Position numbers and translations under genes: made by a program. From assembly GCF_031769215.1 (NCBI RefSeq), contig NW_026782116.1:1612001-1676000 (forward strand): a DNA stretch of 64,000 bases, in the 5' to 3' direction. The DNA is from Ylistrum balloti (lineage: Eukaryota). Positions 3,401 through 13,954 of this stretch are shown here, piece by piece. A model generated the notes under the pieces. It had not been told where the DNA came from. It saw nothing but the letters and a program-made list of their open reading frames with translations, and searched no databases. How positions within the stretch are numbered: position 1 is the stretch's first letter; each line of letters starts with the position of its first letter.

Positions 3401-4152
3401 CCATTATTGGGAGTGGGAACAACTTTCAACCAGTCAGCACTGTCAGCATCCTTTGCCTGTTACAATGGAAAATTCAAATACATCATCAAAACAAAGAATA
3501 TTTACATACATCAGATTCAAGAGTGACTAGACTGATATAAAACACAACCTTGTGTATATGAAACATTCATTTGTATGCATATTCTCGGATATAAGCACTT
3601 TGGTATTGATATACTTTCGCTTCAGCATGATAAACTGCAACCGATACCAAAAATTGAAAAAAGACCAAATATTTTTTCATGGCGTTAGATCAAGGATTTT
3701 TCGACACTTCCAACATCATACAAGAAACATCGCAAATGCCGGACAATCTCGAACAGTGTTTCGGTGTTTGTGACCATATGTTGGTCTGTGCCGGATGTAC
3801 TGACCACCATTATTTCAAAGATAACATCAAGGAAAACAACTAAAATTTGGTGGCGTAATCGAATGCGACAATATTTCATGATGATAAATACCTTTGAACA
3901 CGTAAATACACATCGGACGTCCACCGACCAAAGACAAAACAGCGAAGACAAAATCTGTAGAAATCCGATGAAAGCAAGTGCTATCAATCCGGCTTCATAG
4001 TATTCTTCAAGGCCATACACGCATGTCCAGCAGTAGAACCATACACTATACAACAGGACGAATGGTCCTATATACCCATGGAGTATCAATGGTCGTATGT
4101 TATAGCACGTAACTGACTGGACTTCTTCGTTTAAAGGTGTCGACGAGGCCAT
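421..4152 (-). CDS. ATP13A1: P5A-type ATPase ATP13A1/Spf1, 5' part. Coding exons 4152-3892, 3456-3367, 2720-2533, 649-421; gene continues beyond position 1
   Basis: Spliced frame is continuous with GT-AG boundaries: [10 protein letters not shown]...CSK / [30 protein letters not shown] / [13 protein letters not shown]...YGRN / [86 protein letters not shown] and [29 protein letters not shown] are ATP13A1 signature strings. Confidence 0.95.
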
Positions 4153-4377
4153 GTTGCCTCCGCCGAAATAAAATCTGAGTTAGTGATGCGCTTTAGCGAG
4201 TGGACACGTGTCTGTAAACATTAAATTGACGTCGCTTTAAACAACAAAGTTAAGGAGATCTGTACCGTAGTTCTACCCTAACCTTCTTCCCTTAAACAGT
4301 AGTGTTGTTGCTGTGAGTTAGTGGGAAATTGATTAGAACAGACACAAACTCCAAATATCGTTTCAACATGTTACGCA

Positions 4378-7367: not shown

Positions 7368-8495
7368 ACTGCATCATACAACTGTTTCGTCCTTCTAGGA
7401 CTCGTCAGTGATGCTACATCATACAGCTGTTTCGTCCTTCTAGGACTCGTCAGTGATGCTACATCATACAGCTGTTTCGTCCTTCTAGGTCTCGTCAGTG
7501 ATGCTACATCATACAGCTGTTTCGTCCTTCTAGGACTCGTCAATGATGCTACATCATACAGCTGTTTCGTCCTTCTAGGACTCGTCAGTGATGCTACACA
7601 ATACAGCTGTTTTGTCCTTCTAGGACTCGTCACAGCTGCTACATTATACAGCTGTTTCGTCCTCCTAGGACTCGTCAGTGATGCTACATCATACAGCTGT
7701 TTCGTCATCATTGGACTCGTCAGTGATGCTACACAATACGGCAGTGATGTTTACAGCTGTTTCGTCTAATTGGACTTTCAGTGATGCTACACAATACAGT
7801 TGTTCCGTCCTTCTAGGACTCGTCAGTGATGCTACATCATACAGCTGTTTCGTCCTCATTGGACTCGTCAGTGATGCTACATCATACAGCTGTTTCGTCA
7901 TCTGGACTCGTCAGTGATGCTACATCATACAGCTGTTTCGTCACTCGTCAGTGATGCTACATCATACAGCTGTTTCGTCCTTCTAGGACTCGTCAGTGAT
8001 GCTACATCATACAGCTGTTTCGTCCTTCTAGGACTCGTCACTGATGCTACATCATACAGCTGTTTCGTCATACAGCTGTTCGTCAGTGATGCTACACCTC
8101 CTCCTAGGACTCGTCAGTGATGCTACATCATACAGCTGTTTCGTCATCATTGGACTCGTCAGTGATGCTACACAATACGGCTGTTTCGTCCTTCTAGGAC
8201 TCGTCAGTGATGCTACATCATACAGCTGTTTCGTCCTCATTGGACTCGTCAGTGATGCTACACAATACAGTTGTTTCGTCCTTCTAGGACTCGTCAGTGA
8301 TGCTACATCATACAGCTGTTTCGTCCTCATTGGACTCGTCAGTGATGCTACACAATACAGCTGTTTCGTCCTTCTAGGACTCGTCACTGATGCTACATCA
8401 TACAGCTGTTTCGTCATCATTGGACTCGTCAGTGATGCTACACAATACAGCTGTTTCGTCCTTCTAGGACTCGTCAGTGATGCTAGATCATACAG
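7368..8495. repeat. 45-bp minisatellite, about 25 units
   Basis: Unit TGTTTCGTCCTTCTAGGACTCGTCAGTGATGCTACATCATACAGC, with some internally deleted units near 7720-7950 and 8060-8110. It accounts for the repetitive ORFs in the track. Confidence 0.95.
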
Positions 8496-8868
8496 CTGGT
8501 TCAGGAGGTGCACTAGTCCCATAGTTAAAAAATAGTTATTTCCATGTAAGAGACAATTTGAAAACGACGTCTTGTCAAAATGATTTTATGAAGTGTGATA
8601 TGATAGCTGTGGCGGGACTTTAGGATAAAACAGACGAGATTAACCCTTCCAGGACAGCTAGTCTCTTGCTATTTGTTTTTACTCATTGTTAAATTATTGT
8701 AAAATGAATCGAGAAAGTCGGAATGACTGTAATTCTCGTTTAGCAACTTGGTATGCGAGCTACACTGTTAAATGGTGACATTTGAAAACTTGGTAACTAT
8801 GCGAGCTACACTGTTAAACGATGACATTTGACAATTTGAACTAATATCAATCGTTAGTGATTACATAT

Positions 8869-9131: not shown

Positions 9132-11861
9132 CTAATGCAATTCATCGTTGGTACATAATTCATTAGTCGGCCTGATCTTTCTTGTGAGTGGTTCGAGTTT
9201 GTCCTCGTGAATGCTCCCACCTCTGTCCAGAATAGGCTGCAAATTAAAGTGCTTGAGCGACTTAGTAAGATCTGCACGTATTTGTTGTGTTTCACCCTCT
9301 GAACGCTCCTTAAACAAGTTCACATCCGGATAATCCGTGTGGAAATTGTACATAGGGAAATACTTCTCCAAACTTGGATTGTTGGCGAAGAATTGTGGGA
9401 GGTTTCTGTGTTCCAAAGAGGTGTCGATAATATGGACAAGGTGTTTGCATGCTGACGTCACGTTCGGCAAACGTACGTCATCGATCCATCTCAAATGTAA
9501 AATACCATGAAGGAGAGCATTTTTGATATGATAGGACGACAGCACGTGATGCAGTTGTGAGCTAGGATTCCTTTCGACGTCGTGTTCTCGAACGGCCTTA
9601 AGTATTCTGGCGCCTCTCACCAGACGCTGAGCGGTCAAATTGGTGGAAATCCATCTATCCAGAATACGCATTTCGAACTGAGAGTGGGACATACGCCAAG
9701 CCGTGTCTGGGTTAGGAATAGGCTCGACACGGTGATCATTTTGGGAACTCGGAACCCATCTTGAAACCATGAACTTTCTTAAGGTTGACCCATCTTTTCG
9801 AATGTTATATCCGGGCACCATGTCGATACTAATTCGATCGCCATTTACTGTAGCGTCTAGTTTGATGGCTGGTGCGGCCGCTTGGCGCTTGATGTTGAAG
9901 CTGGCAAATTCGGGGTTTTGATTCAACTTCTGTATAGCTGCGTCAATCCGTCCTTTGATCAACTGATCATGGAAAACTCTTGCATTAACATACTGCTTAC
10001 CGTCTCTTTCTACAAAAAGATTTTTCGGTTGAACGGTCATACGACTATTCACCTTATTGATCTCGATTTCACCCAGACCAGCGGGCAGGTTGTTGCTGGG
10101 CGATTCCTTAATGGTAGCGGTGGTTCCCAGGAAGGTGAAAGGGAGCACTACATCAAATTCATCTGCCGCTCCAACCTTTAGACCCTCTCTCGCACCTCCT
10201 TGCTTCACGAATGGTCGGAATCTCAGAAACTGGTGAGTTTTCTCGAGTGTCTTCAGTTCTTGGTACAGATTTTTCATTAGGCGACTGATTTCTACTTGAT
10301 TATTGTGAAAACTTGATTTCTCTATTTTAACGTATTTGTCGTGGAATGTCCTCAACGCTTTGTCTTCGGAACCAGACCATACCATGTCAGATCTAGCCGG
10401 AGGCTTCCAGTTGTTGGGCACACCAACATCGAAATAGATCTCTCCCGTGCTGTAAAAGAAATAACTTAACGCTGGAATAAGTCCATTAGATATCACATAT
10501 ACAAGTGCTACAATACATCATGTACACTAAAAATGAACTGCATACCTACATGCCCTAAGCTCTGCCGTTCGATCCCTCAAGAACTTTGTGATGGTTATAC
10601 AATAGTGTCTTTCACCTTGAAATGTTTCATAATACTCATAAAACACAAATGAATTTTTTGTTTTCGTAATTAATAAAATATTGTATGTATAAATTCTTAA
10701 GTAACGTTTGCGTTAAATTATCAACATTTGTTTTTGGCCATGGTTTTATTAGTTCTTATTCCAGTCTATAGAACCTCCTCACAAAAGGCCGACCTAGTTT
10801 TCATGAATAATTCATGAAAGATGATTGTTTTTGTGTTGAACGCATTGCTCGTGTTAGAAATGATTTCTTTAACTCGAACCTCGTTATCCGTCCCTTTATT
10901 CCATACGACATACCACTAGCTTTTAAAAGGACTGGACACGGTTCGCTAAGTACTACTGTTAATCTATAGAACAGATAATTGATATGCACTTCTGTAAACA
11001 GAGCTATTTGTTTTGTTTCTAAAACAAGAACAACAACAAAAAACAATAACGCTCGGCCTTTATCGCTCACATGACTTTGCACGGCTGTAATCGTTTCATC
11101 AAAACTAAAGGAAAAGAAATTCTAAATATCAAAGCACACAACACAACATATCTTTTTTTGCACTGGGACAACCTTTTTCCCGAGGGGGTTCGTCAGACCA
11201 TCCATGCTCCATTTGTTCTATCCTCCCTCCCTAGAGGGTAGACACCCGCCGATTTTATAAAATGATTCCCCTGCAAACAAGAATGCTTGGAAACAAATTT
11301 GAGCAAAATTCAATAATTCCTACAAGAGGTGTGGAGCCAAGGTCCACTGTTTACACAAAAGCCTTTTACTCCACCGTACAATGCTTTGGATTAAATTTTG
11401 GCAAAATTCAATAATTTCTACAGAAGGAATTTAAAGAATTGTGCTAAATATCCACCTTTTGGGGCTCGCACCTCACGCTCATGGGGTCCAAGACCTAATA
11501 TTTATAGAAACTTGGTTCCCCTCCTCCAATGTTCCTTCTCACCAAATTCCGTGCAGCCATTCATGACTAGAAGCGAGTTTAACAAGTTGACTGACGATGT
11601 ACGCCGCGCCATGGCGTAAGCTCACCAGTCCTTTGGACCAGATGAGATAAAAACGAAAGACATGAAGCCCAGGAGAAAAATATGGCTAATATTACCAACC
11701 AAACGACAAGTGTATAGCGTTGCATTAAAAAAATCTTCATTGAGAAAATATGTTTAAACCTCATATAACCCTATTAGAAATCCGTCATTACTTCCCGGTC
11801 AATATATAATGTCTGATTCTGTCCAAAATTACAATAATTAAGCTTAATCAACATACCACAT
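9132..11861 (-). CDS. cGAS-like receptor (cGLR; Mab-21/cGAS nucleotidyltransferase), about 440 aa. Exon 1 coding 11861-11857 (ATG TG), intron 11856-10450, exon 2 10449-9132
   Basis: Motifs: QGGAREGLKVGAADEFDVVL (G[G/S]-x11-EFD), third acidic residue in ISIDMVP, WRMSHSQFE, SSYHIKNALLH and LPQFF, all typical of cGAS/Mab-21 proteins. A strong acceptor TTTCTTTTACAG at 10450 lies inside the tracked ORF. The phase-2 donor ATGTG|GTATGT joins in frame (5+1318=1323 nt), giving MCTGEIYFDVG. Confidence 0.88.
11250..11655 (+). mobile_element. Non-autonomous Helentron/HINE-like interspersed repeat inside the cGLR intron; 5' boundary uncertain
   Basis: Ends in TACGCC...GGCGTA plus an imperfect hairpin AGCTCACCAGTCC-TTT-GGACCAGATGAGAT followed by an A-run, resembling bivalve HINE 3' termini (recalled, not searched). 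Confidence 0.55.
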
Positions 11862-11930
11862 GATTGTCTTCAGCTGCACTGCTGACGTGTCCCCAGCTGT
11901 ACGACAGACAGATCTACATGAGTCATTTAC

Positions 11931-11960
11931 ATATATAGCCTACAAATCGAAACCGAAACT
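11931..11960 (-). promoter_or_regulatory. cGLR promoter: ISRE AGTTTCGGTTTC (11960-11949), TATA-like TATATAT (11937-11931), nearby AP-1 heptamer TGAGTCA (11919-11925)
   Basis: Exact match to the IRF/ISRE consensus AGTTTCNNTTTC, 88 nt upstream of the proposed ATG. Confidence 0.7.
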
Positions 11961-13270
11961 ATGGTATTGCACGTAAGAGACCCGCTTTCAATAAACATAA
12001 AAACAATAGGGCCTATATGTGTGAAGACTGTAATACGCTTGTAGCGACCTTATTCTTGTTTGATATTGAACGAATTTGTTAAATAATCGGTACGTTATCT
12101 AAAATAGGATTGTGATGTATGATAGTATATCTAAGTAGTTGTGCGATCATTATTTTCTGAAATATAAATTAGGACACGATATCATATGGAAACGTGTTAT
12201 TAGTTCTTACTGTCACGATCCTTTTTCGCTTTTATGCTTACTTGTTCTATATCTCGGCATGTGACACAAATTCTTACGAAATAATCCCATTGTTACGCAT
12301 ACTGTATGTTATCATTATTGGTGACTATGGTGACCATGGGTCGTGTATGTGGTGCTGAATTTTTGGTTGAGGTTGCTTTGCTTTTGTAATAAAAGGAAGC
12401 ATATGAGAAAAAAAATCAGCGTTTCAATTTTGACAATACCTTTTATGTGTGTTCTTTGATGCATATCGAGTTAATTGTTAATTTGCGTTTAAGAAGGCCG
12501 GAATATCTATTTGAAATATCGATGTTACAGTTGTGTTGATCCCATCTGAGGTTGTTCTGTAATTCTGTAAATCCTCGAGTACCGTGAATTTGTCTAGTTG
12601 GAACTTCGTGTGACAATCCCATTCCAAATGTTCTTGTTGTACTTGTGTCGTCTTATGGTTTGTGTGTGTCGTACGCTGTCGTCGGTTTAAGAGTGTTGTA
12701 TATCTAAGGAAGTCGTTTATATTAGGATAGGTTCCTTAAGTCACAGGGATATTTTTGTGTTCTTAGCATGCATGTATTTAGCTATGTGTGTGGTGATATC
12801 ATTGGTAAGTAAGATTCATTGCTGGGATTTCTTTACTTGTGGTTTAACCCGACTGATATCTCAGGAAATAGTGTGAGAGGTGTATCATGTTCTCCAGCGC
12901 AAGCGTTGGGGGTATTGTTTCCTTTGTCTGTGGAAATGGTTTAGTTTTTTTTTGTCCAAAAATATGAGTGATAATGTAAACGTGATCGTTGAGGTTTTCT
13001 GATTTCTTAGCGTATCTATGCTTTATACCCCTAGGCGAAAGGTAAGATTGTGGACGTTTAAGCAATTGTTGTCAAACAGCTTCCACAAAACCCTTCCAAT
13101 ATTTAGCTCTTCAGTAGCGAAGATTTTCGTTCTCAATTCTAGCCATCTTCCTTTTCCACATTTATCTCCCTTTCCTGTATTCATCCTTCTTTTTCTGTCA
13201 TCATCTCAAACAATAGATAATGTTAATGTGTATAAAACTAAACCCATTAATCTGTGTTAATAGATAACCC

Positions 13271-13439: not shown

Positions 13440-13880
13440 TACTTAGGAAATTAGTTCTGTAAACATGGATTTCTGGAAGCTTCCCGAAATCCAAAGAGGA
13501 GTCGATAATATGGACAAAGTGTTAGTATGACGTCACCATCGGCAAACTTGCGTCATCGATCTATCTCACATGTAAAATAACACAGAGAAAAGTATTCTTA
13601 ACATGATGACAATACGCGTGCAAGCTAGGAGTCCTTCCGATGTCATGTACTCGAATGGGTTTCACTTTTCTTGTGCCTGAGCTGTCAAAGTTCACATCTC
13701 GAACAGAGAGTGGACATATGCCACACCGTGTTTGAATTTAGGGGCAATTTAGTGAGTCATTTGGGGGGCATCTTTATAGTTAGCAGTTTGGCCAGGAATA
13801 TGTCGTATTTGAAAAGAGTTGAAGGATTCAATTTACATTCTTTTAGACACGTTGTAGCTGAACTTTGTCGTCAGCGGCCG
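13440..13880 (-). pseudogene. Decayed, 5'-truncated paralogue of the cGLR gene
   Basis: Collinear similarity to about 9360-9885 (e.g. TCCAAAGAGG.GTCGATAATATGGACAA, CGTCATCGAT, TGTAAAATA, GCGGCCG). Shows frameshifts and stops, e.g. TVWHMS-frameshift-SLFEM-TGA versus TAWRMSHSQFEMR. Confidence 0.88.
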
Positions 13881-13934: not shown

Positions 13935-13954
13935 CTACAAATCGAAACCGAAAC
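13935..13954 (-). promoter_or_regulatory. Second ISRE (GTTTCGGTTTC) upstream of the cGLR pseudogene
   Basis: The 20-mer CTACAAATCGAAACCGAAAC is identical to 11940-11959. Confidence 0.7.

Follow-up and report, generated by a model that had tools for sequence, protein, structure and literature searches.

The gene LOC132549840 lies on the minus strand of a 64,000-nucleotide stretch of the genome of the saucer scallop Ylistrum balloti (contig NW_026782116.1, positions 1,612,001 to 1,676,000; hereafter the window, whose internal positions are used throughout) and, as read from its sequence, is an intact two-exon scallop gene for an innate-immune enzyme of the cGAS-like receptor (cGLR) type. Its open reading frame (ORF), at 10496-9132, is present, and joining ATGTG (11861-11857) to position 10449 yields an open coding sequence (CDS) of 1323 nt. 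The predicted product has 440 amino acids (aa), a mass of 50.7 kDa, an isoelectric point (pI) of 9.27, and only 3 Cys; the two-exon layout proposed in the initial annotation, made from the DNA letters alone (11861-11857 plus 10449-9132), holds. Exon 2 encodes a part that matches RefSeq XP_060069796.1 ("uncharacterized protein LOC132549840") at 100% identity. This part opens with an N-terminal NxWxxP segment, continues through the Mab-21 nucleotidyltransferase core and the Mab-21_C helical bundle, and ends in a variable tail. The N-terminus (MCTGEIYFDVGVPNNWKPP) lacks hydrophobic character, and no membrane anchor is apparent in the sequence. The features of the locus are as follows.

11919..11960, minus: promoter blocks, ISRE-like (interferon-stimulated response element) GTTTCGGTTTCGATT and TATA-like CTATATAT, conserved in three genomes
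roughly 11900-11935 (outer reach), minus: 5' untranslated region (5'UTR) of exon 1, upstream of the ATG at 11861
11857..11861, minus: putative coding part of exon 1, ATG TG, with donor GTATGT; the joined frame begins MCTGEIYFD
10450..11856, minus: intron 1, 1407 nt, which holds the RefSeq alternative 5' coding exon and the GTG-started "MISNGL" extension
about 11543-11612, spliced to 10507, minus: RefSeq alternative 5' coding exon (XP_060069796.1, 481 aa, MARRTSS...)
10450-10463, minus: polypyrimidine tract and AG acceptor at the 3' end of intron 1
9132..10449, minus: coding exon 2, residues 2-440, with PF03281, PF20266 and the region of the dN/dS estimates; stop TAG at 9134-9132
10152..10199, minus: predicted activation loop Q-G-G-A (G86, G87) ... 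D-E99-F-D101-V, with E99-F-D101 at 10160-10152
9822..9824, minus: predicted third catalytic Asp, D211, in S-I-D-M-V-P-G, 110 codons past D101
9597..9674, minus: position of the cGAS zinc ribbon, EMRILDRWISTNLTAQRLVRGARILK, a short Cys-free predicted helix-turn-helix with five conserved basic residues
8869..8874, minus: AATAAA polyadenylation signal, ~260 nt past the TAG stop; the 58 nt around it match the Mizuhopecten 3' region

The family assignment rests on domain matches and, above all, on the active site. In Pfam searches, the protein matches Mab-21 (PF03281; 36.3 bits, residues 88-264) and Mab-21_C (PF20266; 25.0 bits, residues 280-357), both modestly above the 24.1 cut-off, which is the outcome of the hidden Markov model search against PF03281 that the initial annotation had proposed as a check; neither MID51-like_C nor PF21297 was matched in the Pfam search of the protein. 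The catalytic signature described in that annotation, namely GG, E-F-D, and a third Asp about 110 codons later, proved exact in its coordinates, with GG at codons 86-87. In an alignment of 68 sequences, the Ylistrum protein and 67 relatives, the D211 column is Asp in 66, and near-invariant columns (in 438-aa numbering, to which 2 is added for the full length) are K91, E97, D99, D209, W251, E259, K284, S305, Y306, and K309. Together with R252, S254, and S256, these columns align in HMMER with the cGAS triad and the nucleotide-binding motifs WRLSFSxxE and SYHxK, and GG is aligned with the GS of cGAS. Conservation across the alignment, under purifying selection, extends to the triad and to the residues that contact nucleoside triphosphates (NTPs), namely R, S, S, E, K, S-Y, and K. 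The loop itself reads QGG(S/A) in the scallop clade versus QGS(S/A) in other relatives; G[S/G] is an accepted activation-loop motif for cGLRs, so GG fits (PMC9980059). The Ala that follows GG is specific to Ylistrum within the scallop clade and is a common variant overall, found in 18 of the 62 sequences ungapped at that column, the Ylistrum protein included. The active-site motif by which Li et al. define the family (PMC9980059) is found here as G86-G87, E99, D101, and D211, with the preceding residue being K, not a hydrophobic one. Taken together, these features support reading the predicted protein as a Mab-21/cGLR-type nucleotidyltransferase that is intact and whose active site is complete.

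Within the Mab-21 superfamily, profile comparisons support a position nearer to cGAS and the cGLRs than to MAB21L1 or MiD51. The family profile run against the PDB recovers 8gjy best (6.6e-47), followed by cGAS (1e-42 to 1e-44), Tc-cGLR (3e-42), and Cv-cGLR1 (3e-34), with MAB21L1 (in two stretches) and MiD51 at ~1e-20 and MB21D2 at 2.5e-5; best matches to MAB21L or MiD proteins, which the initial annotation had named as grounds for abandoning the idea, did not materialise (1e-20 versus 1e-42 to 1e-47). The narrow scallop-clade profile matches only cGAS (1e-3) and Tc-cGLR, and leaves MAB21L1 (5eog) and MiD unmatched at E up to 10. We equate 8gjy with Sp-cGLR1 on the strength of a match between its sequence and the start given in Table S3 of Li et al. 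(PMC9980059). This enzyme responds to double-stranded RNA (dsRNA) and makes 3'3'-cUA, Tc-cGLR (7lt2) also responds to dsRNA, and Cv-cGLR1 (8gjw) responds to double-stranded DNA (dsDNA) and makes 2'3'-cUA (PMC9980059). With these animal cGLRs, the Ylistrum protein shares the two-lobed Mab-21 fold, the G[S/G] loop, the [E/D]h[E/D]...[E/D] triad, and the NTP-contact residues, as well as a basic, single-domain build without a zinc ribbon, in this case in a bivalve genome with many paralogues; the identity to the solved cGLRs is 14-19%. An AlphaFold2 model built on the 68-sequence alignment (mean predicted local distance difference test, pLDDT, 92.7; predicted template-modelling score, pTM, 0.92) likewise predicts structural homology to cGAS, cGLR, or CD-NTase enzymes: in Foldseek, MiD51, cGAS, Cv-cGLR1, and Tc-cGLR are tied (E ~1e-11 to 1e-12; query-normalised template-modelling score, TM, 0.54-0.62). 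MiD51 and MiD49, Mab-21-fold proteins that, like MAB21L1/2, are not known to make a nucleotide product, differ in having a membrane anchor and lost catalytic acids, whereas here the anchor is missing and the triad is present; the Ylistrum protein is likewise not orthologous to MAB21L1/2, a highly conserved pair, and its triad is fully conserved. MiD or MAB21L identity was rejected on the profile scores and the conserved triad.

The comparison with vertebrate cGAS turns on the zinc thumb. Between the SxSxxE strand and the next helix, where vertebrate cGAS has the H-C-C-C zinc ribbon, the Ylistrum protein has a 3-residue turn: the segment from SHSQFE to the LK helix is MRILDRWISTNLTAQRLVRGARILK, with no Cys and no His, and its 25 residues are modelled by AlphaFold2 as helix, 3-residue turn, and helix, with no protrusion. 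Vertebrate cGAS further differs in its long disordered basic N-terminus, absent here, and in a core that is ~18 residues shorter between the catalytic acids, at an overall identity of ~15%. The initial annotation was right that the thumb is truly missing; this does not set the protein apart, because the loop at the thumb position is 18-29 residues long in all 68 aligned sequences and the H-C-C-C pattern occurs in none of them; the dsRNA sensor 8gjy (Sp-cGLR1, coral) likewise has a short loop, with one Cys. With all 67 relatives also devoid of a thumb, its absence neither predicts the ligand nor marks novelty. In place of the thumb and post-thumb helix of cGAS sits an Arg/Lys-rich helix (R275, R278, R281, K284, and R287 in 438-aa numbering) that is invariant in the scallop clade. 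Near the N-terminus, ahead of the spine helix, a conserved N-x-W-x-x-P motif (10377-10430, residues 9-26) reads PNNWKPP in Ylistrum; most bivalve relatives have NEWRKPV or something similar, and the Sp-cGLR1 construct has NEW at its beginning. The motif falls within model residues 1-27, a part to which no solved cGAS or cGLR core aligns, and is modelled with pLDDT above 90.

The evolutionary record indicates a gene that has been maintained for a long time. It belongs to one of a pair of old, scallop-specific sister lineages within the Mab-21 nucleotidyltransferase family: in a quick maximum-likelihood tree, the scallop clade (SH-aLRT 100) splits into two old sublineages, both with Ylistrum, Mizuhopecten, and Pecten members, and the closest partner of the window gene is the orthologue from Pecten. 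Values of dN/dS between the three orthologues are 0.10-0.12 at dS ~1; transcript contigs are present in related scallops; and, in a second Ylistrum balloti individual, the CDS is intact, with just three single-nucleotide polymorphisms (E438D, S361S, and Q154R). A pseudogene was rejected on the dN/dS values and this intact allele. Word searches with the protein and with the clade alignment retrieved only scallop proteins and one 27%-identical Mizuhopecten paralogue, those for relatives gave scallop and other bivalve proteins with no named oyster, coral, or insect cGLR, and a search with the scallop-clade profile across 1.84 billion representatives yields just 169 proteins at E up to 1e-3. The paralogue, Mizuhopecten XP_021357690.1 (sample 63 of Li et al.), was, of the named proteins outside the clade, the nearest in the word search; it is itself a scallop Mab-21/cGLR member and falls in a different large clade of bivalve sequences in the tree. 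In the sister sublineage, Pecten maximus LOC117342493 (P0012; 904 aa) is modelled as a single protein with two complete cGLR units in tandem that are each other's closest relatives in the tree; behind this model may stand either a genuine double-cGLR fusion in the manner of OAS2/3 or a merger of two neighbouring genes.

The elements GTTTCGGTTTCGATT, CTATA(T/A)A, and CACGTC are kept upstream of the gene in Ylistrum, Mizuhopecten, and Pecten at a divergence where synonymous sites are saturated (dS ~1), and the 11900-12000 promoter region contains the ISRE-like element GTTTCGGTTTCG. The conjunction of an ISRE-like element and a TATA box suggests transcription driven by interferon regulatory factors (IRFs) and induced by infection. 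Two further features of this region were recorded. A minimal upstream ORF (uORF), ATG-TAG, occurs at 11914-11919 (minus strand), with an ATG-TGA at the aligned positions 15-20 of contig L001 from another scallop, just 5' of the coding start; the L001 uORF falls inside the transcript contig. In addition, a partial dead tandem copy of the gene lies ~2 kb upstream of the promoter (13468-13678 and 13935-13954, minus strand), with ~140 nt that are 79-80% identical to 9390-9532, a tblastn fragment covering residues 281-354 at 47% identity, and a 20-nt stretch identical to the ISRE-containing block of the promoter (11940-11959 = 13935-13954); Pecten is without the dead-copy stretch, and the distance from the promoter to the shared upstream sequence is ~1 kb there versus 3.6 kb in Ylistrum.

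These observations can be combined into a model that we consider probable as a whole: LOC132549840 would encode a functional cGLR that, translated from the ATG at 11861, synthesises a cyclic dinucleotide upon ligand binding and thereby activates scallop STING. The basic 440-aa protein would bind a long polyanionic ligand along its basic face, made up of the spine helix and the Arg/Lys-rich helix; the GG activation loop would become ordered on binding; E99, D101, and D211, holding two metal ions, would next link two NTPs to give a cyclic dinucleotide; and the product would activate one of the scallop STING proteins, with IRF factors driving infection-induced transcription of the gene through the ISRE-like element beside the TATA box. 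The pattern-recognition role and the STING signalling are inferred. A long double-stranded nucleic acid is proposed as the most likely ligand because the protein is basic and has the conserved Arg/Lys-rich helix, and the pI of 9.27 falls within the range of nucleic-acid-sensing cGLRs, above 8.5 (PMC9980059). Roughly estimated, and provided the protein is an active enzyme, dsRNA would have about an even chance of being the ligand, some other ligand or none at all would be clearly less probable, and dsDNA less probable again. Among the enzymes for which ligands have been defined, seven are dsRNA sensors and two oyster enzymes are dsDNA sensors (PMC9980059). With identity to every characterised member at only 13-19%, the caution in the initial annotation that neither ligand nor second messenger can be read from the sequence was fair.

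Several points weigh against the model. The D101-to-D211 spacing (X = 107) falls outside the X50-90 of the published strict motif; the D-to-D distance has a median of 125 among the relatives and is 161 in sample 63, and X50-90 evidently was no hard filter for Li et al. because that protein was screened nonetheless. Their screen of 140 proteins took in Mizuhopecten entries, sample 63 among them, and yet this distant paralogue is outside the 15 active cGLRs that were analysed in depth (PMC9980059). A literature search found no paper that mentions LOC132549840 or its orthologues. The other points bear on what kind of protein this is. No added ligand was required by six of the 15 active cGLRs, and ligands other than nucleic acids have been proposed for some (PMC9980059), so that a catalytically competent cGLR need not be a nucleic-acid sensor: it could be constitutive, respond to a non-nucleic-acid ligand, or make a product that signals other than via STING. 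The low identity to any characterised member and the conserved N-terminal NxWxxP, outside all solved cores and with no known role, leave room for such a protein, but the proposed sensors of this kind are acidic, with a pI around 5 (PMC9980059), whereas the basic pI and the conserved Arg/Lys-rich helix at the ligand face fit nucleic-acid sensors, and we regard this alternative as unlikely. A bolder variant, that the lineage recognises a ligand or makes a nucleotide signal so far undescribed for any cGLR, would point to the GG loop, the NxWxxP segment that packs on the core in the predicted model, and the ISRE-like promoter as its distinctive features; to us it appears a long shot, although, if true, the gene could represent an IRF-inducible amplifier arm of bivalve antiviral signalling.

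The remaining points concern enzymatic activity itself. MAB21L1/2 and MB21D2 also keep complete active sites with no known product (PMC9980059), marginally first in the Foldseek ranking, effectively a tie, are chains of the non-catalytic MiD51, and Pfam MID51-like_C has additional matches in 8 of the 68 aligned sequences, all of which would suit a Mab-21 fold with an active-site motif but no enzymatic signalling, in other words a factor in development or an adaptor that binds nucleotides, comparable to MiD51, MAB21L1, or MB21D2. Against such a role stand profile E-values at least 20 orders of magnitude better for cGLRs and cGAS, the clade profile that picks out cGAS and Tc-cGLR alone, the lack in the Ylistrum protein of both the MID51-like_C match and an N-terminal membrane anchor, the full triad and NTP-contact residues kept under purifying selection, and the immune-type ISRE-like promoter; we judge it to be very unlikely.

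The start of the protein is the aspect of the model in which we depart from the public annotation. According to the model, translation begins at the ATG at 11861, with A at -3 and only 5 nt of the CDS in exon 1. The splice acceptor of exon 2 is tttcttttacAG, preceding 10449, of textbook form (ttatttcttttacAG followed by C, at 10450/10449). The "MISNGL..." start of the tracked ORF, which the initial annotation had called intronic, is indeed a GTG-started 16-codon stretch (10450-10496) upstream of this conserved acceptor, and from the stop at 10520-10518 to position 10449 the frame contains no ATG, which means that the conserved residues 3-23 need a spliced-in start. The orthologous proteins of Mizuhopecten yessoensis (XP_021341764, 82% identity) and Pecten maximus (XP_033729582, 81% identity) begin MCTGEIYFD, and both loci share the layout, with ATGTG running into a GTA(T/A)G donor, a ~1.1-kb intron, and an acceptor AG before CACGGG; ATGTG followed by GTA is invariant in the three genomes. 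Logan contig L001 (1.4 kb, intron-less, 68% identity) has ATGTGTACGGGTGAG contiguous and starts MCTGEIYFD, with a 5'UTR that aligns with window positions 11857-11935. The 5-nt coding start at 11861 and the 11857/10449 junction, the likely start proposed in the initial annotation, are therefore strongly supported by orthologue models, the related-scallop transcript, and promoter conservation, all comparisons of sequence. That the RefSeq model is right instead, with the protein starting MARRTSS... and the ATGTG exon untranslated or unused in Ylistrum balloti, is very unlikely: it is the deposited NCBI model (XP_060069796.1), and the run search for this species returned a single run, genomic DNA of another individual, and no RNA run that could exclude it, but none of the orthologues or paralogues compared has anything that corresponds to its 43 extra residues, its 5' exon has no match within the Mizuhopecten or Pecten introns, a 4-nt TTTA insertion at 11578 in the second individual would frameshift that exon, and the model reads across the conserved polypyrimidine tract and acceptor, leaving aside an exon and promoter that three genomes keep and that a related transcript contains in joined form. 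The RefSeq N-terminus was probably mis-predicted from intron sequence, and the public model start is probably wrong; corrected, the gene model would lose 43 probably spurious N-terminal residues and regain the conserved start that it misses. Intron 1 as a whole has no similarity to the Mizuhopecten and Pecten introns compared with it, and the second individual carries an 82-nt deletion at 11451-11532, adjoining the RefSeq 5' exon; depth spikes at 11020-11130 hint at a repeated element within the intron.

The surroundings of the gene are collinear with Pecten maximus, with a P5A-ATPase gene downstream and shared sequence upstream, gene order being based on tblastx and the called genes of L004; in Pecten, a Ro60/TROVE gene lies upstream of the orthologue. 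In Pecten maximus, the gene for a P5A-type cation ATPase matches at its 5' end, with 82% translated identity, the downstream neighbour in the window (3886-4267, minus strand). Between the two, 600 nt past the stop codon, a 45-nt minisatellite with 90/135-nt higher-order periodicity extends for ~1 kb (7500-8502) and yields long artefactual ORFs (8044-8535, plus strand; 8052-8522, minus strand).

As a member of its family, the predicted protein is ordinary. The cGLRs, defined by an active-site motif, two-lobe homology, and predicted structure, number more than 3,000, and extreme expansions in bivalves have already been catalogued by Li et al. 2023, with 73 cGLRs and 5 STINGs in Mizuhopecten and 61 cGLRs and 3 STINGs in Pecten maximus (Table S5; PMC9980059). 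With these expansions on record and the thumb absent from all 67 relatives examined, the emphasis of the initial annotation is overstated: this is one more cGLR in a well-catalogued bivalve family, and the current understanding of that family is unchallenged. What commends the lineage is its stability. Whereas most bivalve cGLRs belong to fast-turnover expansions, this one is single-copy, with 1:1 orthologues in at least four scallop lineages, and such a conserved member is a sensible candidate for the biochemistry of ligand and product.

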